Assembly (NCBI GenBank): GCA_950097015.1
Contig: CATNEN010000033.1
Coordinates: 372,001 to 436,000 of the forward strand
Source of the DNA: Macrostomum hystrix
Lineage: Eukaryota; Animalia; Platyhelminthes
Direction: 5' to 3'
DNA: 64,000 bases
The number at the start of each line of letters is the position of its first letter. Position 1 is the first letter of the stretch. The notes beneath the pieces were generated by a model. That model made no database searches and was not told where the DNA came from. It worked only from the letters and a program-made list of their open reading frames with translations. Below, piece by piece: positions 1,761-58,827 of the stretch. The position numbers were made by a program, and so were the translations under genes.

Positions 1761-2144
1761 CTCCCTGTCCTGGGTGTCTCATCCAACGCATGGTGTCCAA
1801 CGCGGACCTGTTGGGCGCCTCTCAGTCTGCGTATAGGGGCTCCCCTGTGGCTAGTAAAGTTAGTTGTTTGCGGCACACAAGTAATCAGTGCTGTTTCTTG
1901 CGGACCCTTCATATCAGTCTATCCTAGAAACTGGCCCACACTCTCCATTTAACTCAATTATTCTGCTGTCCCTTTTCTGTGTCTTCTCCTTTTTCTATCT
2001 TTAAAAGTCTGCCTGCTGTCTAGTGCTCATCGTAGAGGAGCCATGTTCTTTTTGCTTTTCTGGAGTGATTTATCGCCAGGACATGATGCTTTTGGGTGGG
2101 ATTTGGCGCAAACACGGGATCACAATCATTGAGATTATTTAATC

Positions 2145-3625: not shown

Positions 3626-4067
3626 TACTCGCCTTCCTTCGCGAATCAGCAGTATCATTGATTTCCTTCTGCATGCGCCTATTGAATCCCAGCTCTGGCA
3701 ATGAGCCGCTGGGGGCATCCAGTTATTAGCAAAAGCAGCTGTCTACATCCTGGAACTGGGTTTTATTAAATTTGCCAGCCTGAATCACCGTGTCTGGAAA
3801 ATTGGCTTTGGGTGTGTGTTCGAAATTTTTTTTTCGACTTCTAATTTTCCTAGGAGCTACAATGCACTTTTACCGATAATGACATCAGGCGCAGGTGTAA
3901 GACTCGAATAAGAGAGCGACAATTGAGATATTCCATGCAGAAATCAGCTGAATGATTGCCATTGAGGACTTAAGCAGAACCGAACTCTGAGGTTGAAGCA
4001 GGGCGAGGTGAAAGGCGATGAACATGAGGAGAAATTCGATGAGTGGATGGAAAGCGGATGTGACGTT

Positions 4068-5591: not shown

Positions 5592-7364
5592 TCAGGCCGC
5601 TGATGAACCACGTCGGCACCACCGCCTCACAGAATTGAACATGCCGCACAGCTGCTGCTTGAAGAAGGTGTTCATGCAGCCGTAGATTACTGGATTAACG
5701 CCGTGGTTAATGAAATAGAAATAGTACACAGTCTGCTTGAACAGGTCGCTGAGACTCATCCGGCTTGACTTGGCGCCCGCGCTGCCTGCGCCAGCTCCGC
5801 CGATGCCCCTGTTGGCAAGGCCGGTCCGATCGTACAGGCGGTGCAGCTGGAGCAGCTGCAGCTGGAACAGCTGGCTGTAGTTGTCAGCAGCCGCAGACGT
5901 CGTCCAATTTGCGAAGCCGGCTGCCGCGGCCGACCAGCCGCTTGAATTATCTCGGCGCTGCGTCGATGGCGGCGCGCCAAAGCCCAGGCTGCCGACCCCG
6001 CCAGCGCCGCTGCCTCCGCCTCCGCCATCGTCTTGCAGGTGAAACACTAGAAAGAATGGCAGATAGGACAGCAGGTAGAAAAATGTGATGATGCTGAGCA
6101 CTTTGGCTGTCTTGATGTGCGGCCGTTTTCTGCTGCGCTCGGATAAGTGCCTCTGAGCCCTGGCCAGCCGGTTGCTGACCACCGAGTCCTCCCGGCGTTG
6201 GCCGGCCGCGCCAGCTAGCATTCGGCGCTGCTCGGGCGCCTCCTTCGCCGCCCCCGTTGCCACCACTGCCTCGTCATCTTCATCTTCCGCATCTACTGCT
6301 TCAACTGCGTCCTCTCTTCTACTCTCTTGGTTGAATATGATTTTGGCTTCTACTTGGCCTTCTTGAACAGCGGCTGCCGCGGCGGGGTCTTGATCGGGGC
6401 CGCCCAGCACCTGGTCAATGTCCGTCTCCAGCAGCACGCGGCTGCTCTCGGGCTGCGCGAATCGGACACTTCCGATTTCATCGCTGCGGGGGTGTCCGTT
6501 GCGGTCTTTGTCATCGGTTTTGTTGTCGACACCTTCGCGGTGGCCGCCTCCTTTGTCTTTGCCGCTGGACACTCGGCTAACATAGGTGCGTGATTTGTCC
6601 CAGCGTCGCTGGCGTCTGCGCACAAAGTAGAAAATATTGGCGTAGAAGAACACAATGGCCAGCAGCATGCACAGGAATAGCAGGGTTAGGCAGGCCTTGT
6701 ACACCTTGACAGTGAAGGCTGGTAAGATGCTGTAGTCGGAGATGCAGTTCGCCATGATCACGGGATGATTCTGCACAATGCCATTCTTGCGCACGATGAT
6801 ATTTCGCCTAGTGCCAGTTGTGAGGCCAAGCGGCGTGCCCACAGCGAAGCCCAGCAGCAGCGTCAGGCCGATGAGTCGAACTGCCCGCCGACGGCCAGTC
6901 TGGATGCCCGGCACGAAGCAGATGATGGCGAATCTGTCCACAGCGATCAGGCAGAGCAGGAAAGCCGACGAAGTCACCAAGGAGCAGCGGAGAATGTGAA
7001 ACGCTTTGCACATCAGGTCCGTGGTGGCGCCTCGCCAGACGTCCTGATAGACGGTTGACGGTATGACAACGGCGCACACGGCCATGTCGAGTGTGGCCAA
7101 CGCGATGACATAGACATTCTGCGGCAAATCGCGCAGACCCCGGTAGAAGAATATCACAACCAGAATGTTGCCTAGCAGGCCCACCAGGGCCAGCGCGCCC
7201 AGGCTCAGCGTGATGGCAATTTGAACCGGCTGTGGCAGCTCGCTGCCTCGCTTAAATGCCGCCTGCAGCATCTCGCTCATCAGGTGGAAGTCCGGGCCGC
7301 CGCTACCGCCGCCGTTGCCGACGTCCCAAGCGCTGCTTTCGTTGCTTCTCAATGCTAGAGTCAT
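5592..7364 (-). CDS. Intronless class A (rhodopsin-family) orphan GPCR, 590 aa, peptide-receptor-like
   Basis: Seven hydrophobic segments; TM1 GLLGN, TM2 LATLD..C..V.P, TM3 C..F...S...L..IAVDRF (DRY variant), ECL2 Cys (ANCI), TM5 FFYANIF, TM6 FFYLLSYLPF, TM7 INHGVNPVIY. ATG 7364-7362, TGA 5594-5592. Confidence 0.93.
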   Translation of the reverse strand: MTLALRSNESSAWDVGNGGGSGGPDFHLMSEMLQAAFKRGSELPQPVQIAITLSLGALALVGLLGNILVVIFFYRGLRDLPQNVYVIALATLDMAVCAVVIPSTVYQDVWRGATTDLMCKAFHILRCSLVTSSAFLLCLIAVDRFAIICFVPGIQTGRRRAVRLIGLTLLLGFAVGTPLGLTTGTRRNIIVRKNGIVQNHPVIMANCISDYSILPAFTVKVYKACLTLLFLCMLLAIVFFYANIFYFVRRRQRRWDKSRTYVSRVSSGKDKGGGHREGVDNKTDDKDRNGHPRSDEIGSVRFAQPESSRVLLETDIDQVLGGPDQDPAAAAAVQEGQVEAKIIFNQESRREDAVEAVDAEDEDDEAVVATGAAKEAPEQRRMLAGAAGQRREDSVVSNRLARAQRHLSERSRKRPHIKTAKVLSIITFFYLLSYLPFFLVFHLQDDGGGGGSGAGGVGSLGFGAPPSTQRRDNSSGWSAAAAGFANWTTSAAADNYSQLFQLQLLQLHRLYDRTGLANRGIGGAGAGSAGAKSSRMSLSDLFKQTVYYFYFINHGVNPVIYGCMNTFFKQQLCGMFNSVRRWCRRGSSAA

Positions 7365-9858: not shown

Positions 9859-10242
9859 TCGTAGTAGCTAGAATCGTAGCAGTGATTTTTTGGTGTAAGA
9901 TCTAAGTTTATTATTTTTTCGTTCGTAAGTTTTCTAGCATTTTAATGTGGATTTTTTCATCCATTCTGTTAGGGACAGATTCTAAACAGGCGTTTAACAA
10001 AGCTCCACAAGGTTAGCTGTCGGCAAACATCCAACAAACTAAAACAGAGAAGCAGCTCATCTTTCTCATACTGAGTCCCAGGTTGATCGTTGGTGGCGCT
10101 GTTGTTGCTAATTGCCTACCATTTTAACTGTACCCGCTGCAGCATAAAATTCTCCTGCAGACCCGTAGATTATCTGCTTTTTTACAATGCCACTCTGCCC
10201 CGCTGCTGAAAAATTATTTGTCTCCTGCCACAGTTTCCACAT

Positions 10243-11890
10243 CACTGTCAGTCTTGTCTCTCATCAGTGTCAGTCTTGTCTCTCATCACTGTCAGTCTTG
10301 TCTCTCATCACTGTCAGTCTTGTCTCTCATCACTGTCAGTCTTGTCTCTCATCACTGTCAGTCTTGTCTCTCATCACTGTCAGTCTTGTCTCTCATCACT
10401 GTCAGTCTTGTCTCTCATCACTGTCAGTCTTGTCTCTCATCAGTGTCTTGTCAATCATCAGTGTCAGTCTTGTCTCTCATCAGTGTCAGTCTTGTCTCTC
10501 ATCAGTGCCAGTCTTGTCTCTCATCAGTGTCTTGTCAATCATCAGTGTCAGTCTTGTCTCTCATCAGTGCCTGTCTTGTCTCTCATCAGTGCCAGTCTTG
10601 TCTCTCATCAGTGCCTGTCTTGTCTCTCATCAGTGCCAGTCTTGTCTCTCATCAGTGCCTGTCTTGTCTCTCATCAGTGCCAGTCTTGTCTCTCATCAGT
10701 GCCAGTCTTCTCTCTCATCAGTGTCAGTCTTGTCTCTCATCAGTGCCAGTCTTCTCTCTCATCAGTGCCAGTCTTCTCTCTCATCAGTGCCAGTCTTGTC
10801 TCTTATCAGTGCCAGTCTTGTCTCTCATCAGTGCCTGTCTTGTCTCTCATCAGTGCCAGTCTTCTCTCTCATCAGTGCCAGTCTTGTCTCTTATCAGTGC
10901 CAGTCTTGTCTCTCATCAGTGCCTGTCTTGTCTCTCATCAGTGCCAGTCTTGTCTCTCATCAGTGCCAGTCTTGTCTCTTATCAGTGCCAGTCTTGTCTC
11001 TCATCAGTGCCAGTCTTGTCTCTCATCAGTGCCTGTCTTGTCTCTCATCAGTGCCTGTCTTGTCTCTCATCAGTGCCTGTCTTGTCTCTCATCAGTGCCA
11101 GTCTTGTCTCTTATCAGTGCCAGTCTTGTCTCTCATCAGTGCCAGTCTTGTCTCTCATCAGTGCCAGTCTTGTCTCTCATCAGTGCCTGTCTTGTCTCTC
11201 ATCAGTGCCAGTCTTGTCTCTCATCAGTGCCAGTCTTCTCTCTCATCAGTGTCAGTCTTGTCTCTCATCAGTGCCAGTCTTCTCTCTCATCAGTGCCAGT
11301 CTTCTCTCTCATCAGTGCCAGTCTTGTCTCTTATCAGTGCCAGTCTTGTCTCTCATCAGTGCCTGTCTTGTCTCTCATCAGTGCCAGTCTTCTCTCTCAT
11401 CAGTGCCAGTCTTGTCTCTTATCAGTGCCAGTCTTGTCTCTCATCAGTGCCTGTCTTGTCTCTCATCAGTGCCTGTCTTGTCTCTCATCAGTGCCAGTCT
11501 TGTCTCTTATCAGTGCCAGTCTTGTCTCTCATCAGTGCCAGTCTTGTCTCTCATCAGTGCCTGTCTTGTCTCTCATCAGTGCCTGTCTTGTCTCTCATCA
11601 GTGCCTGTCTTGTCTCTCATCAGTGCCAGTCTTGTCTCTTATCAGTGCCAGTCTTGTCTCTCATCAGTGCCAGTCTTGTCTCTCATCAGTGCCTGTCTTG
11701 TCTCTCATCAGTGCCAGTCTTGTCTCTCATCAGTGCCTGTCTTGTCTCTCATCAGTGCCAGTCTTGTCTCTCATCAGTGCCAGTCTTCTCTCTCATCAGT
11801 GTCAGTCTTGTCTCTCATCAGTGCCAGTCTTCTCTCTCATCAGTGCCAGTCTTCTCTCTCATCAGTGCCAGTCTTGTCTCTTATCAGTGG
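10243..11890. repeat. 22-bp minisatellite (tcagtgccagtcttgtctctca)n
   Basis: About 75 units; all three + frames open because the unit lacks stops. Confidence 0.97.
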
Positions 11891-12559
11891 CACTCACTGG
11901 GAGTCTTATTTTTCCTGCTATCATTGTCACTGATTCAAAATCCAACAATCGGAAGCAGGAATGTGTCCTGAGAGTGTTGCGCTGACAAGTACTCTAGTTT
12001 AGACTGACCAGCTCAATATTTCTCATGTGCTGCTCAGATTGAGCATACATCGAAGGTAGTGCTGCACTCCTGTTTGCAACGTGCTGAATCACAAATGAGA
12101 AAGTTTTAGCCCGCTACTATTGCTACTTGCTTGTCCTTCCGCTCTGCGGTATTGAGTTGGGTTCAGCCCGCTGAGCAGTTTGCTCAGCCTGTCATCAGAC
12201 ATCCGGTCAGGCTATAATTAACCTGCACAAATTTCTGTGAAGTGCGCAGACTTCTCTCTCATAGCGGAGGTCGCGAAACGAAAGTAGATTCCTACTTTTT
12301 GACCAATCGGTTGAAGACAGAGTTGTCAGTGAAATTCGGATAGTGAGACAGATAGTCAGTGATCGGGACAGACGAGAGAAGAGAGAATTTGAGAGATTGA
12401 GAGAGTGAAGGTAGAGACAATAGGGTAAAGAGAGGGGAGGAAAGTAGAGAGACTCGGAGGGAAGTTAGGAGACTAGGAAAGAAGAAGAGAGGTGGAAAGG
12501 AAGTAGAGAGAGAAGAGAGATGAAGTATAGATACAGGTGCGAGAAGTAGGGAAATAAGA

Positions 12560-14020
12560 ATAGAAGTAGGGAGATGAGGAGGGAAGTAGGGAGATGAATA
12601 CGGAAGTAGGGAGATGAGGAGGGAAGTAGGGAGATGAATATGGAAGTATGGAGATGAGGAGGGACGTAGGGAGATGAGGAGGGAAGTAGGGAGATGAATA
12701 TGGAAGTATGGAGATGAGGAGGGACGTAGGGAGATGAGGAGGGACGTAGGGAGATGAGGAGGGAAGTAGGGAGATGAGGAGGGAAGTAGGGAGATGAGGA
12801 GGGAAGTAGGGAGATGAGGAGGGAAGTAGGGAGATGAGGAGGGAAGTAGGGAGATGAGGAGGGAAGTAGGGAGATGAGGAGGGAAGTAGGGAGATGAGGA
12901 GGGAAGTAGGGAGATGAATATGGAAGTATGGAGATGAGTAGGGAAGTAGGGAGATGAGGAGGGAAGTATGGAGATGAGGAGGGAAGTAGGGAGATGAATA
13001 TGGAAGTATGGAGACGAGTAGGGAAGTAGGGAGATGAGGAGGGAAGTTGGGAGATGAATATGGAAGTATGGAGATGAGGAGGGACGTAGGGAGATGAGGA
13101 GGGAAGTAGGGAGATGAGGTGGGAAGTAGGGAGATGAGGAGGGAAGTAGGGAGATGAGGAGGGAAGTAGGGAGATGAGGAGGGAAGTAGGGAGATAAGGA
13201 GGGAAGTAGGGAGATGAGGAGGGAAGTAGGGAGATGAGGAGGGAAGTAGGGAGATGAATATGGAAGTATGGAGATGAGTAGGGAAGTAGGGAGATGAGGA
13301 GGGAAGTAGGGAGATGAGGAGGGAAGTATGGAGATGAGGAGGGAAGTAGGGAGATGAATATGGAAGTATGGAGATGAGTAGGGAAGTAGGGAGATGAGGA
13401 GGGAAGTTGGGAGATGAATATGGAAGTATGAAGATGAGTAGGGAAGTTGGGAGATGAAGATGGAAGTATGGAGATGAGTAGGGAAGTATGGAGATGAGTA
13501 GGGAAGTATGGAGATGAGTAGGGAAGTATGGAGATGAGGAGGGAAGTTGGGAGATGAATATGGAAGTATGGAGATGATTAGGGAAGTATGGAGATGAGTA
13601 GGGAAGTATGGAGATGAGTAGGGAAGTTGGGAGATTAAGATGGAAGTATGGAGATGAGTAGGGAAGTATGGAGATGAGGAGGGAAGTTGGGAGATTAAGA
13701 TGGAAGTAGGGAGATGAGGAGGGAAGTATGGAGATGAGTAGGGAAGTTGGGAGATGAAGATGGAAGTATGGAGATGTGTAGGGAAGTAGGGAGATGAGGA
13801 GGGAAGTATGGAGATGAGGAGGGAAGTATGGAGATGAGTAGGGAAGTATGGAGATGAGTAGGGAAGTATGGAGATGAGTAGGGAAGTTGGGAGATGAAGA
13901 TGGAAGTATGGAGATGTGTAGGGAAGTATGGAGATGAGTAGGGAAGTATGGAGATGAGGAGGGAAGTTGGGAGATTAAGATGGAAGTAGGGAGATGAGGA
14001 GGGAAGTAGGAAGATGAGGA
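12560..14020. repeat. 20-bp purine-rich minisatellite (gggaagtagggagatgagga)n
   Basis: About 70 units with variants grading along the array. Confidence 0.96.
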
Positions 14021-16590: not shown

Positions 16591-16753
16591 CTAATATTCG
16601 TTGTACTTTAATACATGATTTACTAAAGATACTACTTATCAATTTGGTTAGCAGTAGAATACTGGAGTATAGTATCGTAATTTGTGTGACCCTTGATGTA
16701 GCATGGCACGGAAGGTGCTAAAAGCATTTGAAAAAATTTATGATTTCCAACAG

Positions 16754-19700
16754 GCCGACAGCTCAGCAGATGCGCCGCAGTCAGCCAGCTGGTCCTTCGA
16801 CGAAGTCAAGGAGGTTCATCTGAGACGCTACGAGTTGCGCGACAACGCCTTGGAAATCTTCCTGACCAGCGGTGCCGCCTACCTGCTGGCCTTCCAATCG
16901 ACTCGGGATCGCGACGAGATTGTGCACGCAGTTGACAGCCTCGAGCTGGACAGTCGAGTACGTCAGCTGTCCGTTGACGAAGCGCAGCGTCAATGGGTCA
17001 CTGGCCAGATGAGCAACTTTGAGTACTTGGCCTTTCTCAACACCGCCTCGGGCCGGTCCTACAATGACCTGATGCAGTACCCCGTGTTCCCTTGGGTCCT
17101 AGCCGACTATGACTCAGCCGAACTCGACCTCACCCAGCAGGCCACCTTCCGCGACCTGGCCAGACCCATCGGCACTCAGGACGAGTCCGCCGTGGCCAGG
17201 CATCGGGATAAATACGAGGTGCTCGAACGGCAGTACAGGGAGCTGGGGCCTGAGCACGCCACGCCGCCATACCACTACTCGAGTCACTATTCCAACTCGG
17301 GCACTGTCCTGCACTATCTGGTGCGACTGCCGCCCTTCACCCAGCTGTTCACAGTGTACCAGGACCGCCACTTTGACCTGCCCGACAGGACATTTCACTC
17401 CATCCGCACCAGCTGGCGTCTGAGCTCTCGCCTATCAGACTCGGACGTCAAAGAGCTCATTCCGGAGTTCTTCTGCCTGCCGGAATTCCTAGTCAACAGC
17501 GAAGATTTGGACTTCGGCGTCAAACAGTCCGGCATACGAGTTGACAATGTCGAACTGCCGCCCTGGGCAGCCAACGATCCGCGCCGGTTTGTGCTCATTC
17601 ATCGGGCGGCACTCGAGTCGCCGCTTGTCACCGAGAGGCTGCACAAATGGATTGACCTGATCTTCGGATCTAAGCAGATTGGTCTGTACTCAGCTGAGTC
17701 TATGAAACTAGTTTGAGTACCGATAAGGAGAACACTTTCTTAGGCTAGTTTGAGTACCGATAAGGAGAACACTTTCTTAGAAACTAGTTTGAGTACCGAT
17801 TAGGAGAACACTTTCTTAGAAACTAGTTTGAGTACCGATTAGGAGAACACTTTCTTAGAAACTAGATTGAGTACCGATTAGGAGAACACTTTCTTAGAAA
17901 CTAGTTTGAGTACCGATTAGGAGAACAGTTTATTAGAAACAAGTCAGGGTACCGATTAGGTGAAGACTTTCTTAGAAACTAGTTTGAGTACCGATTCGGA
18001 GATGGCTTTCTTAGAAACTAGTTTGAAGTCCACAAGTTAAGAAAAAATCTTAATGAAAAATTAGGAGTGTCGTTTCTTAGAATATTACTTTTTTACTGGC
18101 GGCTCTCTAAGAACCAGTTTGAATGGTTCGTCAAGAGTACCATTTCTTTTAATCTAGTTTGTTATAGTTTTATAAGCTTCAAAAAGCTCAATAGAAATAA
18201 CTAATTAATGACAATCTTTCCTAGAAACTACTTGACTTCCTAGAAACTACTTGATTTCCTAGAAACTACTTGATTTCCTAGAAACTACTTGCTTTCCAAG
18301 AAACTACTTGATTTCTTAGAAACTACTTGATATTCTAGAAACTACTTGATATTCTAGAAACTACTCGTTTCCTAGAAACTACTTATAATTCAACCACCGC
18401 CGCAAACACTAAACTACAGGTAAAGCGGCGCTGAACGCTGTGAACCTGTTCCATCCCTACACCTACTTCGGCGCCATCGACTTAGACCAAATCGACGATC
18501 CCGTTCGCCGGCGCGCTATCGAGACGATGATCAAAACCTACGGCCAGACGCCGAAGCAGCTGTTCCGAACGCCGCATCCGCCGCCTCTGTCAGCGGCGCC
18601 TCGGTCGGGTCGGGTGCCCGGCGCTTTCGGAGTTCGGTTCGGCGGCTACTGCGGCTCGCCTGACAGCGCTGCTCCACCTCAGGTAAGTGCGGCCTTTTCA
18701 ACGGATCCCTCATAACCTTTTTTACTCGGTCATTGGATTGGTCATTACCCTCTGCCCACCGGTCATCGGATCGGTCATTACCCCTGCCCACCGGTCATTG
18801 GATCCGTCATTACCCCTGCCCAGCGGTCATTGGATCCGTCATTACCCCTGCCCACCGGTCATCGGATCCGTCATTACCCCTGCCCACCGGTCATCGGATC
18901 CGTCATTACCCCTGCCCACCGGTCATCGGATCCGTCATTGCCAGGTTGCCTGGTGTGAGCAGCTGGCAGCGCCGGTGGCTCAGCTGGTGTTGAACCCGGC
19001 CCCGCCCGGTCCCGGAGTGCCGGAGATGCTGGGCCTCTGTCAGGGCACCTGCGCGTTGGCCGGCGGCCAGCTGCTCGTCGGCGCCGCCGATTGCGTCTTC
19101 CGCTGGCGCCCGGCGCCAACTTCAAGCGGCGCCGGCTCCGCCGCGGCTGTCGGCCAGGCGCTGGGTGCCCCGCCGCCTGAATGGCTGGGCGACCGGGTCA
19201 CGGTCGCGGCCGCCTGCGGTCGCAGGGTCTTCTGCGGCCTCCGCTCCGGCCTGCTGCGGGTCTTCTCCATCGCCACAACCTCACCGTTGTCATCCTCGAC
19301 GGGAACTGCCGGCGGCCGCAGTCGACCTGGCCGCCTTGACTGGCTGGGCGAAGCGCCCGTGCCGCTGCTGGGCCACCGGTCGGCCGTGACGGCAGCTCAC
19401 GCCTGCCCGCAGTTCGCCCTGCTGGCTACTGGCGACGCCAATGGTCGGGTGCTGCTTTGGGACACCAACCAGGTGGCCTACGTCAGGTGCCTGCGACCGT
19501 CCGGGCCGCCGGTGGTTGCGCTGACCGTGTCGCCAACGCTGGCTGATGTGGCCGTGCTTGGACAGGTTCGGAATGGGGGTTCATTTGATTTATGGGCTAA
19601 ATAAATCTGGGTTTTTTTTTAAAATATTGATTGATCATTATGATTGTTTGATAAATGAATTAGTTGATTGATTGATTGGTTGGTTGGTAACCAATTGGTT

Positions 19701-24300: not shown

Positions 24301-24520
24301 ATGGAACTAACAGCTCGCGATTCTCATGGAACTGCCCAGCTCGCGATTCGTCATAAAAACTGGATCATCCATGAAGCTAACATGCCTCGATTCTCATGGA
24401 ACTGACAGCTCGCGATTCTCATGGAACTAACAGCTCGCGATTCTCATGGAACTAACAGCTCGCGATTCTCATGGAACTAACAGCTCGCGATTCTCATGGA
24501 ACTGACAGCTCGCGATTCTC
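21310..24520. repeat. 25-bp satellite (gattctcatggaactgacagctcgc)n with interspersed 36-bp variants
   Basis: Period 25 read directly; scattered 1-bp indels from ~22370 to 24390. Confidence 0.97.
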
Positions 24521-25430
24521 ATAGAACTGACAGCATGAAGCTACATGTAGATTCTCATGGAACTGACAGCATGAAGCTACATGTAGATTCTCATGGAACT
24601 GACAGCATGAAGCTACATGTAGATTTTCATGGAACTGACAGCATGAAGCTACATGTAGATTTTCATGGAACTGACAGCATGAAGCTACATGTAGATTTTC
24701 ATGGAACTGACAGCATGAAGCTACATGTAGATTCTCATGGAACTGACAGCATGAAGCTACATGTAGATTCTCATGGAACTGACAGCATGAAGCTACATGT
24801 AGATTCTCATGGAACTGACAGCATGAAGCTACATGTAGATTCTCATGGAACTGACAGCATGAAGCTACATGTAGATTCTCATGGAACTGACAGCATGAAG
24901 CTACATGTAGATTCTCATGGAACTGACAGCATGAAGCTACATGTAGATTCTCATGGAACTGACAGCATGAAGCTACATGTAGATTCTCATGGAACTGACA
25001 GCATGAAGCTACATGTAGATTCTCATGGAACTGACAGCATGAAGCTACATGTAGATTCTCATGGAACTGACAGCATGAAGCTACATGTAGATTCTCATGG
25101 AACTGACAGCATGAAGCTACATGTAGATTCTCATGGAACTGACAGCATGAAGCTACATGTAGATTCTCATGGAACTGACAGCATGAAGCTACATGTAGAT
25201 TCTCATGGAACTGACAGCATGAAGCTACATGTAGATTCTCATGGAACTGACAGCATGAAGCTACATGTAGATTCTCATGGAACTGACAGCATGAAGCTAC
25301 ATGTAGATTCTCATGGAACTGACAGCATGAAGCTACATGTAGATTCTCATGGAACTGACAGCATGAAGCTACATGTAGATTCTCATGGAACTGACAGCAT
25401 GAAGCTACATGTAGATTCTCATGGAACCGC
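24521..25430. repeat. 36-bp satellite (gattctcatggaactgacagcatgaagctacatgta)n
   Basis: About 25 highly homogeneous units sharing 21 bp with the 25-mer. Confidence 0.97.
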
Positions 25431-25823
25431 ATGAGGATTATGATCGAATGACATGGTGGTTCTGCATCTGGAAAGTTGAAACTGGGATCGCGGAGGCAAT
25501 TGAAATCTCTGTGAAATCAGTTGATTAATTTTCAAGAAATAATCTAGTGAAGCAGTGGAAGATAGATGGATTCATTCTTAAAAATCCTTTTTAGATGTGC
25601 TGCCTTTGAAACTGCATGACTGCATTTTGAAACTGAAACTCATGAAAAACTGATACATCGGTACGGTAGCCTTTCATGCTTATTATTTGAAACTAGCTCG
25701 TATTTATGCCGACAATAAAGCCATTTTTGGCTGGTTGGTATCTGCTCACTGCTTATATGGCATGCTGAGCAGTTATGAGATAGCAGCTAGATTTTTAAGG
25801 CTCATTAAGAAGCATGAAATGAA

Positions 25824-26177
25824 ATGATTGCACTCCTCACAATCAGCTACCTGGGCTGCTACTATGATGTCATGGGACCCGACAGAGACTGCGGGGCCTC
25901 ATCGGAGTCGCCGGGCTCGGTCCGTTCACCGTCAACTACACGAGTCAGGGAATTGTGTCCAGTCAGCGCATGACGGTGCAGCTGTGCAGCGAGGTCTGCG
26001 CCTTTGGCGGTCTTCCGTACTTTGCCGTGCAGAACGGAGTGGAGTGCAGCTGCGGCTGCACCTTCGGCTCGCTGGGCGAGGCGGCAGAGGCCGACTGCTC
26101 GATGAGCTGCGCAGGGAGTTCATCACAGAAGTGCGGTGGCATGCTGCGCAACTCCGTCTACGAGAATCTGTACTTCT
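25824..26177 (+). pseudogene. WSC array unit 1: diverged WSC-domain exon, 1-bp deletion near 25890, no PAN exon found
   Basis: MIALLTISYLGCYYDVMGPDRD / frameshift / (L)RGLIGVAGLGPFTVNYTSQGIVSSQRMTVQLCSEVC...ECSCGC...DCSMSC...KCGGMLRNSVYENLYF, then phase-1 gtgagt donor at 26178. Confidence 0.75.
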
Positions 26178-27019
26178 GTGAGTTCCGAGCTGTATCTTTA
26201 GCTAGGGCGCAGAAGAGGACTTGTAATTCGGAAGAGTGCACAAAGCAGATTTGCTGAGCAAGACAATTTGCGCAGTGATTTCGCGTCAGTATTACAGACG
26301 AAGTAGTTGAGAGCAAGTTTTTGTCAGCGTGCGTTTGTCAGCTACCAGTTCAGATGGAAGTTCAAAGGGGCTGATTTTAGAGCCGTAGCGCAAAGGACTT
26401 TCGCACCAAGGTCCCTGAGCTCGAAAGCTTGAGGGGCTTATCGCGCAATTTGCGCCAAGGAATGCCAAACCCCCTCGCTACGCACGACTGAGGATTTTAC
26501 TATTAGACGGAGGGTGACTGAGCCGCTTCGCTGTCCTGTAAGATGGAGACAGAAGCAATACCTGAGTCGGCATGAGATGTAGAGCTTTGTACTTTTGTTT
26601 AAAGCAATGATTGAATGACCAGTTGCACCCGGAGCAGTCGCTTTGCCAGCAAATGAGTCTCTTTATCGAGTGATCTCTTCAAGGCTATTTTCTACTTCTA
26701 TTCTGCACTTTGAGAATATTCTGTTTTCATAGGAGACTTTAGTTCCAGCAGCTCTATGTCTGGAAAGCTAGTCTGTGTTTTCAGAGTCGAAAGATTAAAA
26801 TGGTTCGCTAGAAACTCTGGCTGTGATTTGCGGTTGGTATATCATTCCTTAAAGAAATTATAAATGAGCCGCCACATCTACCTAATTCTAGGTTTCTTCT
26901 CACCATTTTCCCATCCTCTCCCATCACACTGACAAACGGCTTCGAGTTGAATGCTTTGAGTTCATTCATGAGTTCTGCTGGGGACGTTTGCGACTCTCTG
27001 GCCCGACTAAGAAGGAGAG

Positions 27020-27965
27020 CTGGCGGCAACCGCAGTGGCTGCTCTGCTGGTCGCCGGGTCATTGTGCCAGCGCAAGGCCACTCCCCTCTATGTGGGCTGC
27101 TTCGTGGACCAGGGACCGCCCTACAGACCAGGGACCGCCCTACAGAGACATGGCAGGCTTGGTTGGCATCAGCAGGCTCGGTCCATTCACAATTACCCAT
27201 TCGAACCAGGGAATTGTGTCCAGAAGCGACATGACGGTGCAGCTGTGCAGCGAGATCTGCGCCTATGCCGGGTTCCGATTCGCTGCGTTGCAATCGAGCG
27301 CCGAATGCTCGTGCGACTCCACGTGCGGCTCCTGGGGCTCGGCGCCAGAATCTAACTGCAGCAACAGCTGCACCGGCAATGCGTTGCAGAAGTGCGGCGG
27401 CCCATTGCGCAACTCCATATACGAAAATGTGTATTCCCTCAGTGAGTGCTGTGCTCATGAGTCTGTTCATAGAGGTTGTAGCATAGTGGTTAGGGCGTCG
27501 GACTCACGACTTGAAGGTCGGGGGGTTCGATTCCCGACTCCACTGGAACAATTTGTGTCCTTTAGCTAGACACTTAACTCTGCATTGCTTCAGTTCACCC
27601 AGCTGTTAAATGGGTACCAGCATCAGCTGGGATAATTGAAGGTGGGTGTGGCGTCCCCCCAGTCCATGGACTGAACAGTTGTACGCAGCCTTCAGATGCG
27701 CCACCCAATAGCTGCGGCTGTGTTGTCGGCTGCACATCTGACCCTATTGGGGCAGGTGTAATCAATTGTTATTATTATTATTATTCTAGTTTTGTTCTGA
27801 TGATAACGTATCACCAGTCCCTCGATCCTTGTTCTAGCCGGCTATTTTGAGCACAGTTGCAGAGCATCTACCAAAGCTGCTCCGTCTATCGCTTCAACGG
27901 CAGCAGCGGCCTCTGCCGCCTCAGCAGCTTCCCTACTTGATCCGTTTGGCGAATCAGGCGAAAGT
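27020..27965 (+). pseudogene. WSC array unit 2 (type X) pseudogene
   Basis: In-frame TAA (27008-27010) with no ATG before the signal-peptide codons; 19-bp tandem duplication 27107-27144 shifts frame; donor 27442; SINE in the intron; only a 3' remnant of the PAN exon (SCSVYRFNGSSGLCRLSSFPT*) at ~27875-27945. Confidence 0.85.
27473..27786 (+). mobile_element. CORE-type tRNA-derived SINE, family A, copy 1
   Basis: A-box tagcatagtgg, B-box ggttcgattcc, CORE-like block tgtgtcctttagctagacacttaactc...cttcagttcacccagctgttaaatgggtacc, (tta)n tail; inserted at tag where the paralogous intron (unit 4) reads atagttttg uninterrupted. Confidence 0.88.
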
Positions 27966-28513
27966 TATCGAAAAATTTCGTGATGCACAGAATCACTCGG
28001 GCCAAAGCCGTCCAAGTAGTGTGATGGCTTTAAACTGAGTGCAGGGTGTACAGGAAGTAGGTTGTAGTTTCTCGATTCAGCTGTCACAAATATTTCATCA
28101 GTGATATTCCATCGATGCATTTAGACATGCATTGATATACTTTGAAATACTTTGAAATACACATGTTGGCTCAAGTCACACGTTGCATTTATCAAGGCAA
28201 ATTTTTTATTATAGGAGACAGGCTGCAACTATGAATCTCCATAGCTGTGTGTTTAATGCGTACTTAAATATTTAATCGCCTGGTGAATAATAGTAATAGC
28301 AGTTTCATTTTTTATGAAAACAGATTGACGACATGAAGGGGAGTTAGTGAAACCGCTTCCATTTAATGTTTTTGTGCCTACATAAGTCAGATCCAACTTG
28401 TGAAATAACGAGACACCGATCGGCAAGCCAATTTAACTATATTAAAATCTTCTTAAAAAAAATACTGCTAATTAGCAACATCATTCGCTCCCCAAAGCGG
28501 TACATTTTGCCGG

Positions 28514-29581
28514 ATGTACCACAGGCTCAGAGCTCTGGCTCAGATTGCAGTGGCTGCTCTGCTGGTCGCCGGGTCATTGTGCCAGCGCAAGGCCACTCCC
28601 CTCTATGTGGGCTGCTTCGTCCACCAGAATCAGCAAAACAGAGACATGAAAGGCTTGGCTGGTATCAGCAGGCTCGGTCCATTCACAATTACCCATTCGA
28701 ACCAGGGAATTGTGTCCAGAAGCGACATGACGGTGCGGCTGTGCAGCGAGATCTGCGCCTATGCCGGGTTTCGATTCGCTGCTCTGCAGGATCGGACATG
28801 CTGCATGTGCGGCTCCTCCTACGGCTCCTGGAGCTCTGCGCCAGAGTCCAACTGCAGCCTCAGCTGTGGCGGCAACGCTCTGCAAATTTGTGGCGGATCC
28901 TACCGAAACTCCGTCTACGAGAATGTGTACGCATCGGTTGAGCGCAGCTGGCGACGCAGTCACGAATATATTTTTATATATTAACGAAACGCCGCTTCAT
29001 CGAAACTGCAATAAAACTGTAATAGCTGTAAAGTAGAGTAAAGCTTGCATTTGTAGCATTTGACTTTGACTTGACTCAGCAACAGGGGGCACCAATCAGG
29101 TGCGTGGTTGCCCCAGGCGACCTGAGCAAGGTGAGCCTATCCTGAGTTAAGGCGGGGTAGTCGAAAATGAAATGCTCCACCTTCTCTTCAACGGAGAAGC
29201 AGAAAGGACTTCCTTGCTGCGGATTTCAACTTGCAGATAGCGATGTCTATCGAAACAGCCATGACCACAGCATTATTCACGCTTTGAGACAGTATTTGCC
29301 TTATCTATTTGCTCCACTCGCTCCGTTTCCCGGTTGCAGCCTCCGAGGGCCTTCGATTCCGCAAGTTCGACTCATCGGCCGCCCCACAGCTGGTCACCTC
29401 GGGATTCGCCGGCACAATGTCCTGGAACAGCCCAGCTCAGGTTCCGTTCGAGTGCGCCGCCTTCTGCGCCCAGGCCGCCAACTGCTCGGCATTTCGCTTC
29501 GACGGCCGCGACCGCTGCAGCCTTAGCAGCTTCGCCACCGTCTTCGCTGGCGAGTCGGGCGAAGTTTGGATTGCGGGCTGA
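28514..29581 (+). CDS. WSC array unit 3 (type Y): signal peptide + WSC exon 28514-28937 and PAN/apple-like exon 29340-29581; splice donor mutated GT>TT
   Basis: Open 156-aa ORF (read-through stop at 28984). gcatcgg|ttgagc here versus gcatcgg|gtgagc in unit 5. Exon 2 has an intact ttgcag acceptor and open frame. Confidence 0.72.
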
Positions 29582-30206
29582 AGCCAGCGCTTTGACGAAC
29601 GATCGGCTTATTAATTCAAATAGAAGTTTGAGAACTACAAAAGCGTTTTTATTTATTTTCTCATTGTCACCCTACAGCTCAGTTCATTCAGCTCTGTTCT
29701 AGCTAGAGCATTGCAGATATTTTTAACAATTGACAGCCGTGTCACAATGCCGATGCTTCGGAGCTAGACATCAAAGGAACCTGAGCGACAAGCCACTCTT
29801 TAACGCCATTGTTAAGAGGGGCGCTGGAACAATTCAGCAGGCGAGGTCATTGTCGCTAAGTCATGCATCCTTTGTAAATGAAGGGTAAAATTGTCACTAG
29901 CAAGAACGCAGAATTCGCAAGTTTTCTAGTACCTGGTGAACTTAAAGCCCTTGAAGTGCCTCCTGGAAGAATAAAACACTATGGCATAATTTTTCCGCTG
30001 TTGGAAGGTAAGGAAAAAAGTATTGAAAATGCCGCATTGTGAATTTGCCAGGATTTTTAAGTATCCATGGGCATGAGCTCGTCACCAACTTGAAGCTGAA
30101 GCAGGCCTTACAAATTTATTTAAAGCCCCTGCACTCAAGCTAGTGACTCCGATGTCGCTTTCAATCTCTATTAAGACTGCAGGCCTAAAACTTTTTGCGA
30201 CTCAAA

Positions 30207-31714
30207 ATGTCTTTCAGGCTCAGAGTTGTGGCGGCAATCGCAGTGGCTGCTCTGCTGGTCGCCGGGTCATTGTGCCAGCGCAAGGCCACTCCCCTCTATG
30301 TGGGCTGCTTCGTGGACCAGGGACCGCCCTACAGAGACATGGTAGGCTTGGTTGGAATCAGCAGGCTCGGTCCATTCACAATTACCCATTCGAACCAGGG
30401 AATTGTGTCCAGAAGCGACATGACGGTGCAGCTGTGCAGCGAGATCTGCGCCTATGCCGGGTTCCGATTCGCTGCGTTGCAATCGAGCGCCGAATGCTCG
30501 TGCGACTCCACGTGCGGCTCCTGGGGCTCGGCGCCAGAATCTAACTGCAGCAACAGCTGCACCGGCAATGCGTTGCAGAAGTGCGGCGGTCCATTGCGCA
30601 ACTCCATATACGAAAATGTGTATTCCCTCAGTGAGTGCTGTGCTCATGAATAGTTTTGCTGTTTTCCCAGATCAAAATAGAATGCAATTAAATAAAATGC
30701 GTACAAAGTGATCTGGAAGGTTTGTCAGAAACACCTAAATTGCGCAGTCTCTGATGGAAGCATCACATTTTGCTTGGTCAGAAGCCTCGGTCGGCATCTT
30801 CTATCGGACAGGCAATAAACTTTCGGGTTCACGCCTGAGGCGTCTATCGAGCCGATCGAAGGTCCTCAGCTTGTCTTGAAGCGCTTCTGGAGCACGACAG
30901 ACACTGAGCGCAAAGCCGTCCGAGCAAGCCCTTTGCGACGCTACAGGTCGTCCTGAACACTGGGCCGACCAGGTACCAGAAATGCTCAACTGCCAGGCGC
31001 ATTGTCGGGTTCTCACTAATTCTTCATTGACACTTCTTCGCGCCGAGCCTCAACTCTATGACCTCTTCTACTAGCGACTTGTACTTGCACGGTAGGACAA
31101 GGCGGCGACAGCTGGCGTTTCCCAGCCGTTCGGCCGTGGAGGCTCGGGGCTGACGTAACAGCGCTCCGACTCTTCGCTGACGGGCCAGCGGGAATGCGGG
31201 TTCTCGTTTAAAGGATCCCTGGACGGACCTGTCCACACGGACCTGTTCAAAGACATTTGTAGGCATTGACCCTCAGAGCCTTATCTAGCCTTGCTCCTCT
31301 CCCCCTGTCCTCTTCCCCAGTTGTTCCTCTTCCCCCACCGTTCCTCTCCCTCACCCTCCCCTCTCTCGCCTTCTTCCGCGCTGGCAAGCCTAGATCGGCA
31401 GTAGGCCCCAGTTATTCCTCAGCCGGTCAGATGGTCAAGAACAGCCGCTTTCATTGTCCCTTGCAGCCGCTGACGGTCGCCGATTCCGCAAGTTTGCCGC
31501 CTCTGCCGTCCCTCAGTTGGTGACCACTGTCGGATTCGCTGCCACAATGCTCGGGAACAGCCCAGCTCTGACACTCGTCGGGTGCGCCGCCTCCTGCGCC
31601 CGGACCGCCAGCTGCTCCGCCTTTCGCTTCAACAGCAGCAGCGGCCTCTGCCGTCTCAGCAGCTTCCCTACTTCATTGGTTGGCGAATCAGGCGAAATTT
31701 GGATTTTCGACTAA
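30207..31714 (+). CDS. WSC array unit 4 (type X), intact: secreted WSC + PAN/apple-like protein, 223 aa; exons 30207-30630 and 31467-31714
   Basis: MSFRLRVVAAIAVAALLVAGSLC signal peptide; WSC YVGCF.D...MTVQLCSEIC.....FAALQ..ECSC...NC..SC.G....CGG..RNSIY; phase-1 gtgagt / ttgcag splice keeps frame; exon 2 GCAASCARTASCSAFRFN....LCRL (PAN-like C-x3-C-x5-C-x2-F-x-F...C). Confidence 0.87.
30800..31270 (-). mobile_element. Possible degenerate LTR-retrotransposon integrase (zinc-finger region) fragment in the unit 4 intron
   Basis: RLVLPCKYKSLVEEVIELRLGAKKCQ*..ELVRTR..W loosely follows the Gypsy LVLP..Y...V....H...GHLG..KT..L.R.RF.WP pattern; His/Cys ligands not preserved; this intron (836 bp) is longer than the paralogous ones (176 and 402 bp). 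Confidence 0.3.
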
Positions 31715-32567
31715 GAATGGTCGTACAAGAGCTTCTGTCTTTGTAAATAAATGTCCAATCAGAGAAGCCAGATTGCAATGATAGTGCAACCGATGCCAAT
31801 GGCCTCACTAAAGAACTGCGAATAAATAATGTCATTACAATCCGCTGGATGACACTCGTGGAAAATATCAACAAAAAGAGTCCGTATTTTGTTAAATTTA
31901 TGGAGAATTTGAATGTGCAGCGATAAAAGAAATGTTTGATACTTGACAGTTAATTCACAACTAGCTTTGATTGTGGAGTTCAGATGGCAGTAAAAACTCA
32001 AGAGTCTAGATGAGCTCTTACTAAGCGCGTATCAGTAAGTTCACACCAATTCAACACCTGTAGGACTGAAGACCATTGCACTTGAGCGCAATGGTTCAAG
32101 TATAGTTCTCACTAGCAGACTAGCTAAAGCCAGCACCGCCGTGCCTGTTAGAACAGTCTACCTAGTCCGTTAGATTAGTCCGTTAGATATCTAGTCTAGG
32201 AATCTTGAGGTGTCACAAATATTGAGATATAATAATTTCGAAATTAGAGGTGAGGCATGCTTTCGCTGGAGTGTTCCGACTCGTCTCGGCGATTCTAAGT
32301 GTGCAGCCCTCCAAAAAACAAATTGCTGTTCTAAGTTCTCGATTTGCCCACTCAAGAAAGCATTTTCGTCCGGTCAGCCAAAAACACTTCGTTGCTATTG
32401 ACTTAATGCAGTCGCATTATCGCTATTGCTGGTCATTGCATGCATCAATTTCCTGTCCTCCACAGTTCCGTATTTTGGCTCAAAAGCTAAAAGCTGCACC
32501 ATCAATAATCCCGCGAATTAGAAAAAGCTTAATTTTTCTGAGTCAAGCAGCCCGCAGTCAGTCGTCG

Positions 32568-33408
32568 ATGCATTCTAGACTCAGAGCTCTGGCGGCCATT
32601 GTGGTGACTGCTCTGCTGGTCGCCGGGTCAATGTGCCAGCGCAAGGCCACTCCCCTCTATGTGGGCTGCTTCGTGGACCAGGGACCGCCCTACAGAGACA
32701 TGGTAGGCTTGGTTGGTATCAGCAGGCTCGGTCCATTCACAATTACCCATTCGAACCAGGGAATTGTGTCCAGAAGCGACATGACGGTGCAGCTGTGCAG
32801 CGAGATCTGCGCCTATGCCGGATTCCGATTCGCTGCGTTGCAATCGAGCGCCGAATGCTCGTGCGACTCCACGTGCGGCTCCTGGGGCTCGGCGCAGAGT
32901 CCAACTGCAGCAACAGCTGTGGTGGCAACGCTCTGCAAATTTGTGGCGGATCCTACCGAAACTCCGTCTACGAGAATGTGTACGCATCGGGTGAGCGCTG
33001 CGAACAGAATTTAATATGAGTTAAACGTCGCAAACTCGGCATTTTCAAATTGCTAGACTACTTTCCAGACTGCTAAAGCAGAGTAAAGTATAAAGTCTGT
33101 ATTGCAAGCTAGACTCTAATTTACTGCTCAGAGATTCGCAGGATCCGCTCCATGTGCCGGTTGCAGCCTCCGAGGGCCTTCGATTCCGCAAGTTCGACTC
33201 ATCGGCCGCCCCACAGCTGGTCACCTCGGGATTCGCCGGCACAATGTCCTGGAACAGCGCAGCTCAGGTTCCGTTCGAGTGCGCCGCCTTCTGCGCCCAG
33301 GCCGCCAACTGCTCGGCATTTCGCTTCGACGGCCGCGACCGCTGCAGCCTGAGCAGCTTCGCCACCGCCTTCGCTGGCGAATCGGGTGAAGTTTGGATTG
33401 CGAGCTGA
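32568..33408 (+). pseudogene. WSC array unit 5: chimeric X/Y WSC exon 32568-32990 with 1-bp deletion at ~32895, PAN exon 33167-33408
   Basis: gcgcagag here versus gcgccagag in unit 3; splice sites intact and in phase if the base is restored, so it may be a sequencing error. Confidence 0.7.
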
Positions 33409-34024: not shown

Positions 34025-34205
34025 TACAGTCACAGCTGGCCTCTACAGTGACTGTCTACCCAGACTACCAACTGTCTACCCAGACTACAAACTGTCTACC
34101 CAGACTACAAACTATCTACCCAGACTACCAACTGTCTACCCAGACTACAAACTGTCTACCCAGACTACAAACTGTCTACCCAGACTACAAACTGTCTACC
34201 CAGCT
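34025..34205. repeat. 20-bp minisatellite (ctgtctacccagactacaaa)n
   Basis: About 8 units. Confidence 0.92.
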
Positions 34206-34880
34206 TTTGCGTGTGTATTCGCTTGCTTGCAAATCTGCTAAGCAAACTGTCCGGGGTGTGTCGGGTGGGGCAGAGTGGAGAGTGGGGTGGGGTACGGAGA
34301 GTGAAGGGCGCAACTAGAGCAGCGGACCAATCGCGTCTGCCTCGCATAAGATTGGGGGGTAGGACTTAAGCCACGTATGGCATGCAACACAGAGCCTAGG
34401 ACAGCGAGAGGGGAGAGGGGAAAGCACCAACCAATCAGAGAACTTCGGCCTAAGCTAGCTCGTAAAACCAGCCCCGGCCGGAGAACCAGATTGGCTGGGG
34501 GGCATGTTCTGTGTGGCGGGACGTGGCAAGGAAAAATAAGTGGTAGGTGGCGGCTGCTGAGATGCAGCTCACAAAACAATGTAAAATCGGGCAGAGTAGA
34601 ACAACAAGTAGGATTAGCTTAAGAACACTTCAAAGTAAAATATGAAACTGTCTTGCAATCCATTGCCTTAGCCCTCATAGGCAAAGCAATTATTTAACAA
34701 TTGAAGTCGTTAGAAGAAAAAAAGCTATAGCTACTTTGGAAAGTCAACTTTTGCACGTACGAGCTCCCAAGCTGGTGTCAAATTTTTATATTCTCGCGAA
34801 TAGATGTCATAATGGGTCACCTGAAGTCGCAGCTAGTAGAATATTAGTTGCGTGCGTCCCCTGGGAAAGGTTTCGCTCAA

Positions 34881-45139: not shown

Positions 45140-46375
45140 ATGCGTCGATCAACCAAGTGGATCATCCTGCGTAGGCTTACAATCATCCTGAGCCTGACGG
45201 GCCTGTTCTCACTGTGGTGGACCGGCTATCTTGCGCACCTTGCGCCAGAATGGCTCAACGCTAATGACGGAGTTCAACTTGTTGAAGTGACGACTGGCAG
45301 TGTTAAAAAGCTGCAACAGGATCAGCATAGAAATTTCAGAGAACAAAATTATAAGGTGGCTCCCAGGGCAGGCGATGGAACTTCTGATAAAGTTGAAATC
45401 ACAGCGCTGAGCGAAGCGGTGGGCTCCGGTAAAATCAAGACCGAAAGTACATATAGATTTACGGAACATGTTTTTACAACTCCGACAATGCCGGTCATTA
45501 CAGCTACAAGTACTTTGTATCTATCCGAGCCTAAAGCAGCAGAGCCATCCACCAATCAGCAGACGACTGTTGGATCGTCTGTGGAGCCACAGACTGAGCA
45601 GTCGACATTACACGGCCTATGCAGAAGTGGTCGTGGCGCTGCCGCGTTTCTAGTAGTCAGCGCCTCGTCACGCGAAGCAGAAGCTCAGAGGACCGCTGTG
45701 CTTTCCTCCTGGGGCGCAGAGCTGCATCGACAGCGCCGGCTAGTCTTTTTTGCCCCGGTCGCTCCTACAGAGACGACCCAAGCTTCAAAGCTTTCAGTTC
45801 AGGGCGACCTGCTGACCATCGCCGTTCCTGCGGGTCAAAACCGGATCCTGACCGGTCTGGTTTGGCTGCGCGCGCGATGTCCGAAGGTGCGTGCCATTGT
45901 CCTTACCAGCGACCGGTCCTTCTGGAATGTGCGTCGACTTGAGGAATTTTTAAAATCGCGCAAATTTGACTCCAGCGCCAAAGTGATTTACGGCCGATGG
46001 CCAAAGTCCGCTTCTAGGAGAGTGCTGGCCGCTCAGGCTGGCTTTATAATGCCTGGTCCCGCTGTAGACGCTCTCAAGCGAGCCGCAGCTCAAGCGACGA
46101 ACGACGGTGCGCTGTCTGATATGATCCCCGTGGCTGGACCCCTGATGGAGCTAGGCGGAGTGCGTCAAGTCCAGCTGCAAGGCGATGACCTGCTGCAGCA
46201 GGCGTCCCCTGATCGACCGATCCGGATTTCCCAGCTGGCCTGCCAGATCTTAAATCAGCGCCTGATGGCGATTCACGGCCTCGGCGCAGGGCAAACACTC
46301 AGGCTGTGGCGGCTGATCAGATCTTCCGGACTGATGTGTTTCAGAGAGCGCAAGAAGAAACATAAAAGAAACTGA
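45140..46375 (+). CDS. Intronless type II membrane GT31 (galactosyltransferase/fringe/core-1-like) protein, 411 aa, catalytic motifs degenerate
   Basis: Basic N-terminus, TM LTIILSLTGLFSLWWTGYL, S/T/P-rich stem, then R.AVLSSWG, LVFF, C..V..IVLTSDRSFWNV..L..FL, IYG, AGFIM....V..L, final IHGL......LW, matching GT31 motif order. Family assignment is by pattern recall. Confidence 0.78.
   Translation: MRRSTKWIILRRLTIILSLTGLFSLWWTGYLAHLAPEWLNANDGVQLVEVTTGSVKKLQQDQHRNFREQNYKVAPRAGDGTSDKVEITALSEAVGSGKIKTESTYRFTEHVFTTPTMPVITATSTLYLSEPKAAEPSTNQQTTVGSSVEPQTEQSTLHGLCRSGRGAAAFLVVSASSREAEAQRTAVLSSWGAELHRQRRLVFFAPVAPTETTQASKLSVQGDLLTIAVPAGQNRILTGLVWLRARCPKVRAIVLTSDRSFWNVRRLEEFLKSRKFDSSAKVIYGRWPKSASRRVLAAQAGFIMPGPAVDALKRAAAQATNDGALSDMIPVAGPLMELGGVRQVQLQGDDLLQQASPDRPIRISQLACQILNQRLMAIHGLGAGQTLRLWRLIRSSGLMCFRERKKKHKRN

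Positions 46376-49566: not shown

Positions 49567-58827
<9,261 letters not shown>

Follow-up and report, generated by a model that had tools for sequence, protein, structure and literature searches.

What kind of gene system lies behind a run of short coding exons for WSC and PAN/apple-like domains in the genome of the flatworm Macrostomum hystrix? The exons occupy positions 25824-33408 on the plus strand of the window, by which we mean the whole 64,000-nucleotide stretch that was analysed (positions 372001-436000 of contig CATNEN010000033.1, here C33). We conclude that the locus is very probably a small, decaying tandem array belonging to a Macrostomum-specific WSC-PAN gene family. The run holds five WSC exons, three full PAN exons and one PAN fragment, which fall into five units:

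25824-26177, plus strand: unit 1, relic of a WSC exon (WSC match of 50 bits on 25955-26164; GT at 26178)
27021-27441, plus strand: unit 2, WSC pseudo-exon near-identical to unit 4 (from DNA alignment)
27875-27963, plus strand: unit 2, 3' stub of a PAN exon, its last ~90 nucleotides (91% identity to the unit 4 PAN exon)
28514-28937, plus strand: unit 3, WSC exon with an open reading frame (ORF) and a signal peptide (WSC, 54 bits; ATG at 28514)
29340-29581, plus strand: unit 3, intact PAN exon (PAN_1, 23 bits; stop at 29579-81)
30207-30630, plus strand: unit 4, exon 1, signal peptide and WSC domain with an insert in loop L1 (WSC, 47 bits; no lesion)
31467-31714, plus strand: unit 4, exon 2, four-cysteine PAN domain (PAN_1, 26.7 bits; stop at 31712-14)
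32568-32990, plus strand: unit 5, mosaic WSC exon (ATG at 32568; GT at 32991; from DNA alignment)
33167-33408, plus strand: unit 5, intact PAN exon (PAN_1, 24 bits; 96% identity to the unit 3 PAN exon)

The original prediction for this DNA had named five WSC-coding exons, and all five were recovered: four scanned above the Pfam cut-off (27.8 bits for WSC, PF01822), and that of unit 5 was placed through DNA alignment to the others. It had also named four PAN-like exons, of which three are full exons above the PAN_1 cut-off (PF00024, 21.4 bits; observed scores 26.7 bits in unit 4, 23.0 in unit 3 and 24.0 in unit 5), while the fourth is the 3' stub only. A phase-1 donor shared by all five WSC exons was likewise claimed; GT stands in register in units 1, 2, 4 and 5, but unit 3 has TT at that position (28938-39). 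Given this donor change and the frame disruptions in units 1, 2 and 5, all but one of the five units fall short of a simple intact gene.

The only intact unit is unit 4, as established by alignment of the WSC-exon DNA, direct reading and coordinate checks. Its coding sequence starts at an ATG at 30207, runs to a donor GT at 30631 (GTGAGT) and resumes after an acceptor AG ending at 31466 (TTGCAG). Arithmetic on the exon coordinates gives 424 + 245 nucleotides, or 223 codons, interrupted by a phase-1 intron. An AATAAA lies at 31746, 32 nucleotides beyond the stop, and unit 4 alone has this signal within 150 nucleotides of the stop; units 3 and 5 have no poly(A) signal in that range. The sole Pfam matches are WSC (47.1 bits) in exon 1 and PAN_1 (26.7 bits) in exon 2, and the sole hydrophobic stretch covers residues 1-25, with two arginines ahead of it and no second such segment in either exon. 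The predicted order of signal peptide, WSC and PAN, with neither a transmembrane nor a catalytic domain, thus stands for unit 4, as does the Pfam assignment expected of its two exons. The ratio of nonsynonymous to synonymous substitution rates (dN/dS) of unit 4 against its paralogues is 0.21-0.47. The plan of signal peptide, insert-bearing WSC domain, phase-1 intron and PAN exon is complete in unit 4 and partial in units 1, 2, 3 and 5. Searches and structure predictions were run exon by exon, and a protein of Macrostomum lignano (A0A1I8JKN1, P0002) served as the stand-in for the two-domain protein.

Exon 1 encodes a recognizable WSC domain. Besides the score of unit 4, Pfam gave 54.3 bits for unit 3 and 50.2 bits for unit 1. 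The hallmark of WSC domains such as those of Wsc1 and Kremen is a set of eight conserved cysteines forming four disulfides, together with a CGG motif (PMC9024836). In unit 4 the eight cysteines are residues 34, 77, 81, 97, 99, 114, 118 and 126, all invariant across 24 paralogues, with C126 followed by G127. Unit 4 exon 1 was folded together with 24 paralogous exons, and the model reached a mean predicted local distance difference test score (pLDDT) of 88.8, with values of 94-97 across residues 31-140. It matches the WSC domain of Kremen 1 with Z 17.1 and a root-mean-square deviation of 1.1 Å over 92 residues, followed by the WSC domains of a fungal glyoxal oxidase (Z 14.3) and of yeast Wsc1 (Z 13.8).

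The original prediction had also described a long insert between the first and second cysteine of the domain. Only 92 of the 110 modelled residues (30-139) superpose on the Kremen domain, and the Pfam alignment starts at profile position 15; these two observations together indicate that an insert of ~18 residues is real. It carries the motif R-D-x-x-G-L-x-G...G. Across the 24 paralogues R43, G47 and G55 do not vary and D44 and L48 hardly do, and the tip of the insert (residues ~56-70) is among the most variable stretches. As judged from these alignments, the L1 insert is a signature of the whole family and not a local oddity. WSC domains share the PAN/apple fold, and the beta-hairpin insertions that canonical PAN/apple domains have in L1 and L5 are absent from WSC domains (PMC9024836). 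The WSC domain of this family, whose insert lies in L1, would then be one in which a PAN-like L1 excursion has been added to the WSC-specific loop and disulfides. Unit 4 exon 1 also has two cysteines beyond the canonical eight, at residues 23 and 103 (~30273-30275 and ~30513-30515). Cys23 falls at the predicted signal-peptide cleavage region, and Cys103, which takes the place of a conserved tyrosine in S-T-Y-G, recurs in units 2 and 5 and in one gene of a second cluster described below. The two might form an additional disulfide.

Exon 2 encodes a small PAN module. Among 18 PAN exons, C39, C43 and C61 are invariant and C49 is kept in at least 90%. The strict apple domain of the factor XI type has six cysteines, with a third disulfide linking its N- and C-terminal ends. 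Exon 2 has four cysteines only, so that a strict six-cysteine apple domain is ruled out and the module is a minimal PAN domain. The PAN fold proposed for this exon is supported from two sides. By sequence, unit 4 exon 2 matches the apple domains of Toxoplasma gondii MIC4 (E 3.9e-6). By structure, residues 142-219 of the M. lignano model (P0002; pLDDT 71.5) match ~40 PAN/apple entries with Z 5-7.9, including the N-terminal domain of plasminogen, HGF N, SML-2, an FXI apple domain, MIC4 and the PAN domain of a Colletotrichum copper oxidase. Each of these Z values is middling, yet the list that the model returns appears coherent.

The lesions of the other four units comprise truncation, duplication, deletion and a splice-donor change, and three to four of the five units bear them. 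In unit 1 the signal-peptide region is deleted and the frame is broken by one nucleotide; repeat analysis of the array found no PAN exon between it and unit 2. Unit 2 has a signal-peptide frame without an ATG and a 19-nucleotide tandem duplication (27107-27125, 27126-27144) that shifts its frame, and unrelated sequence replaces the 5' half of its PAN exon. For unit 3, the sole GT near the lost donor is at 28937-38, one base upstream. An exon using it would end at 28936 in phase 0 and leave the PAN exon out of frame; the latter is in frame with exon 1 only via a second AG acceptor at 29346-47. In unit 5, one C is absent between 32895 and 32896, which shifts the frame over the last quarter of the WSC domain.

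The pattern of similarity between units points to how such an array changes. Similarity is restricted to the exons and ~20 flanking bases; introns and spacers cannot be matched, not even those of units 2 and 4, whose WSC exons are 94.8% identical over 440 nucleotides with the 19-nucleotide duplication included. The WSC exon of unit 5 is a mosaic: its first ~330 nucleotides are unit-4-like (at least 97%), its last ~100 nucleotides are unit-3-like (~95%), and the one-nucleotide deletion sits at the switch, within a CC dinucleotide exactly at the junction. From the exon-limited similarity and this mosaic it follows that duplication, gene conversion and loss shape the array; the sequences suggest that old paralogues exchanged tracts by gene conversion and then decayed. 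The fast turnover that had been predicted is borne out by the damaged units, the exon-limited identity and the mosaic copy.

A second and larger WSC-PAN cluster lies ~75 kb from the array on the minus strand (C33:479000-501200). It has ~10 units, ~8 of them with both exons open, and its unit order is mirrored with respect to the array. Unit 1 shares 87-88% DNA identity with the first two WSC exons of this mirror cluster, for units 3-5 the nearest counterpart there is the ninth unit (c2_g), and the last PAN exon of the cluster has 94-96% identity to those of units 3 and 5. By these comparisons, an old inverted duplication seems to have produced both, with the array as its shorter and decayed arm. 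Pairwise dN/dS (Nei-Gojobori) among the C33 genes, at dS values from 0.06 to saturation, was 0.18-0.56 for WSC and 0.13-0.75 for PAN exons. Gene-wide positive selection is ruled out at the pairwise level, every ratio being below 1, and on these estimates the C33 WSC-PAN genes are under loose constraint, purifying to relaxed.

How large is the family to which the array belongs? Searches covered the whole genome (220,453,370 bases in 42 contigs). A six-frame search found at least 150 WSC exons like unit 4 exon 1 (151 matches and 404 candidates, of which 150 were scored). A single PAN exon used as query found 16 places only, and a profile built from 18 PAN exons found at least 149 matches from 360 candidates. 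When the two lists were compared by eye, ~50 WSC exons were paired with a PAN exon on the same strand 100-1500 nucleotides downstream, and 13 of 16 distant WSC loci have a PAN-like exon after the WSC exon according to a local PAN profile. This genome-wide pairing makes the two-exon plan the norm in a family that numbers at least 150 genes, found on contigs C1, C15, C38, C39 and others. The family is therefore not a small local one. By itself, the array is ordinary for the WSC-PAN family: small and for the most part broken, it stands as a satellite to a very large set of genes.

Outside M. hystrix, an exhaustive database search with the M. lignano protein P0002 returned 2171 proteins at E <= 0.001. 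Among these, the hits of 176-219 amino acids that span both domains are all from M. lignano and carry automatic names. Every full-length two-domain hit in the databases searched thus came from Macrostomum, in agreement with the lineage restriction that had been proposed. The non-Macrostomum two-domain candidates P0064, P0136, P0146, P0074, P0092, P0058 and P0024 were rejected as tandem-WSC proteins with no PAN_1 match. One tandem-WSC hit is fungal (Tulasnella), another comes from a mussel and has a kringle besides its five WSC domains, and the remaining ones from outside Macrostomum are metagenome or sequencing-run proteins. One of the top hits, a Diplonema protein, has 23 WSC-range matches, and a rotifer cluster of 209-amino-acid WSC proteins in a protein atlas (score 0.88) fell under the trust level. 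In three further database proteins the whole WSC-PAN unit occurs nine times (P0003, 2673 amino acids), five times (P0004, 1074 amino acids) and once (P0006, 1568 amino acids), at 65-68% identity; most likely these are gene models that fuse neighbouring family genes.

The closest known relatives are WSC domain-containing proteins of M. lignano of 205-224 amino acids (UniProt A0A1I8JKN1, which is P0002, and A0A1I8IAD4, which is P0001). They have the architecture of unit 4, with a signal peptide, a WSC domain with the L1 insert and a four-cysteine PAN domain, occur as dozens of paralogues and share 62-64% identity with unit 4 exon 1. Searches found no functional or expression study of these homologues, which bear automatic names only, and literature searches on WSC plus PAN in flatworms and on the WSC domain in seminal fluid gave no match. 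The claim that the architecture is uncharacterised consequently stands in so far as no paper describing it was found, although the M. lignano homologues are already in UniProt and NCBI.

Other WSC and PAN proteins resemble unit 4 in one part each. Kremen 1 (PDB 5FWS), the best structural match to its WSC domain at 27% identity, has the eight cysteines and the CGG motif in common with it. Kremen, however, is a transmembrane receptor for Dickkopf and LRP6 with a kringle-WSC-CUB ectodomain, and compared with it the WSC domain of unit 4 has the L1 insert of ~18 residues in addition. That unit 4 is a Kremen receptor was rejected, as there is no kringle or CUB match and no second hydrophobic segment; a WSCD1/2 sulfotransferase or a fungal WSC-bearing enzyme was also rejected, the 223-codon gene having WSC and PAN only. 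Fungal copper-radical oxidases, according to a review, reportedly have PAN_1 and WSC modules appended to a catalytic AA5_2 domain. They are the only described proteins with both modules that we found, and in contrast to them unit 4 has no catalytic domain; the PAN region of the Colletotrichum graminicola oxidase (PDB 6STX) matches the P0002 model with Z 6.4. The closest solved sequences to exon 2 are T. gondii MIC4 and Sarcocystis muris SML-2 (E 0.04 for the latter), which share the minimal PAN core. These apicomplexan microneme proteins are parasite adhesins with tandem apple domains only, without WSC. The sensor domain of yeast Wsc1 (PDB 7PZ2) has the WSC fold, but it is membrane-anchored and has neither PAN nor L1 insert. 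As it is presented in work cited in PMC9024836, SiWSC3 of Serendipita indica is a secreted beta-glucan-binding lectin made of WSC modules only, without PAN and L1 insert. Within the same genus, the prostate-limited WSC-type transcripts of M. lignano (Mlig-pro4, 16, 19, 37, 46, 53 and others) encode small secreted WSC proteins; prostate WSC genes (Mlig021499, Mlig001771, Mlig031887 and others) are outside the 15 named WSC-PAN family genes of that species.

What might the product of such a gene do? In family members exon 1 encodes the signal peptide and the WSC domain, with its eight cysteines, CGG motif and ~18-residue L1 insert, and exon 2, on the far side of the phase-1 intron, encodes the four-cysteine minimal PAN module. 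The predicted product is secreted and soluble, has ~200 residues once the signal peptide is cleaved off, and combines two different binding modules of the PAN/apple superfold. Most likely it would bind or cross-link glycans or glycoproteins outside the cell in the manner of a lectin, and variation between paralogues would be found chiefly in the tip of the L1 insert and a few other loops.

Several considerations weigh against this account of a decaying array of genes for secreted binders. The PAN_1 scores are 2-5 bits over the cut-off, the PAN fold was modelled on the M. lignano homologue and not on the window's own spliced product, and the gene structures of all units are predictions from sequence. 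The predicted glycan binding is drawn from domain families, and the WSC domain of Kremen and the PAN domain of factor XI also bind proteins. Finally, since the region is repeated and was assembled from long reads, the single-base lesions of units 3 and 5 may have arisen in polishing. We consider it unlikely that both are assembly or polishing errors, so that the array would hold three working genes. The assembly is long-read based and was then polished with short reads; units that are 80-99% alike invite mis-mapped polishing, and the unit 5 deletion lies in a CC dinucleotide at the mosaic junction. However, a quality value of 42.8 corresponds to about one error per 19 kb (PMC10468722), and two lesions at functionally critical bases less than 4 kb apart, beside two structurally broken units, exceed the predicted error rate, to which is added the lack of a poly(A) signal within 150 nucleotides of the stop in both units. 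The opposite extreme, in which the whole local array is dead, unit 4 is unexpressed and the working genes are those of the mirror cluster (C33:479-501 kb), seems to us more improbable still. Lesions in four of the five units, and a mirror cluster with ~8 units whose two exons are both open, would fit it; unit 4, however, retains an intact ORF, canonical GT/AG splice sites, all 8 + 4 conserved cysteines and its AATAAA 32 nucleotides past the stop, and its dN/dS of 0.21-0.47 also argues against a dead gene. A decaying array with one intact member remains our preferred reading.

As to the role of the family, a seminal-fluid function like that of the prostate-limited WSC-type transcripts of M. lignano is one candidate, which we regard as improbable. 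WSC-type BLAST hits were reported for ~25 of 76 prostate-limited M. lignano transcripts (Table S1, Weber et al. 2018), whose lengths fit proteins of ~200-300 amino acids. One prostate transcript, RNA815_80.4, has two WSC domains (PMC4490696), and knock-down of Mlig-pro46, with WSCD2-type homology, lowers sperm competitive ability (PMC6953679). Rapid turnover would also be in keeping with reproductive proteins. Yet none of the 15 M. lignano WSC-PAN gene identifiers is among 310 in situ-tested tail transcripts (PMC10468722 Table S8), a weak test because identifier releases may differ and tail-specific transcripts alone were screened, whereas the prostate WSC genes Mlig021499, Mlig001771 and Mlig031887 are present there as positive controls. 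At least 150 genes would moreover be many for a seminal-fluid set, and the seminal-fluid link is suggested only for WSC proteins in general. That the family is a diversified set of secreted lectins serving in defence, mucus or the gut, where they would recognize microbial or food glycans, is a somewhat better but still doubtful possibility. The very large, tandemly expanded family with variation concentrated in loops resembles the expanded lectin families that other invertebrates use likewise, and the family's absence from the tested tail-specific list would agree with it. Fungal WSC lectins bind beta-glucan, according to work cited in PMC9024836, and the nearest solved PAN relatives by sequence are the MIC4 apple domains and the Sarcocystis lectin SML-2, for which a crystal structure with a thio-galactose ligand exists. 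Pairwise dN/dS below 1 throughout speaks against such diversification.

The rest of the window has its own features. Directly upstream of the array, a perfect 36-nucleotide tandem repeat of ~26 copies occupies 24494-25434 and leaves 312-amino-acid ORFs on both strands. About 600 nucleotides downstream of the last PAN exon, a 20-nucleotide tandem repeat with the consensus ACTGTCTACCCAGACTACAA is present in seven or more copies (34031-34223); the final codons of that exon are not its source. Three ordinary neighbouring genes elsewhere in the window were assigned to families:

5592-7364, minus strand: ORF of a rhodopsin-family seven-transmembrane receptor (7tm_1, 103 bits)
16703-17716, plus strand: BEACH/PH_BEACH exon (313 bits)
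49567-50451, plus strand: exon for a mucolipin extracytosolic domain (54 bits)

A 411-amino-acid ORF at 45140-46375 on the plus strand matched no Pfam family at E <= 0.001. The stretches 1-4000, 10000-14000 and 50000-56000 show an extreme strand bias in composition, with guanine-cytosine (GC) skews between -0.67 and +0.80, and several of their reading frames contain long ORFs; low-complexity or satellite sequence is the probable explanation.

Macrostomum serves as a model in research on sexual conflict, regeneration and bioadhesion. For its WSC-PAN family the locus contributes a view of turnover: conversion tracts that stay within exons, one mosaic copy, and units at several stages of decay. 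It also adds a structural reading of the conserved insert, which lies in L1, where canonical PAN/apple domains have a hairpin, and a first check of the seminal-fluid idea, with a negative outcome. A bolder picture, which we offer tentatively, is that of 150-400 Macrostomum-specific secreted two-module lectins whose specificity is diversified by duplication, gene conversion and loop variation, the L1 insert being a new variable binding hairpin and the target of recognition being the partner (through the ejaculate) or microbes. If true, this would be a large and previously undescribed recognition-protein system in flatworms. A two-module binder family of at least 150 members, absent as such elsewhere in the searches made, would rank among the largest lineage-specific families of Macrostomum, and the WSC-PAN genes are natural candidates for a part in seminal fluid or in defence.

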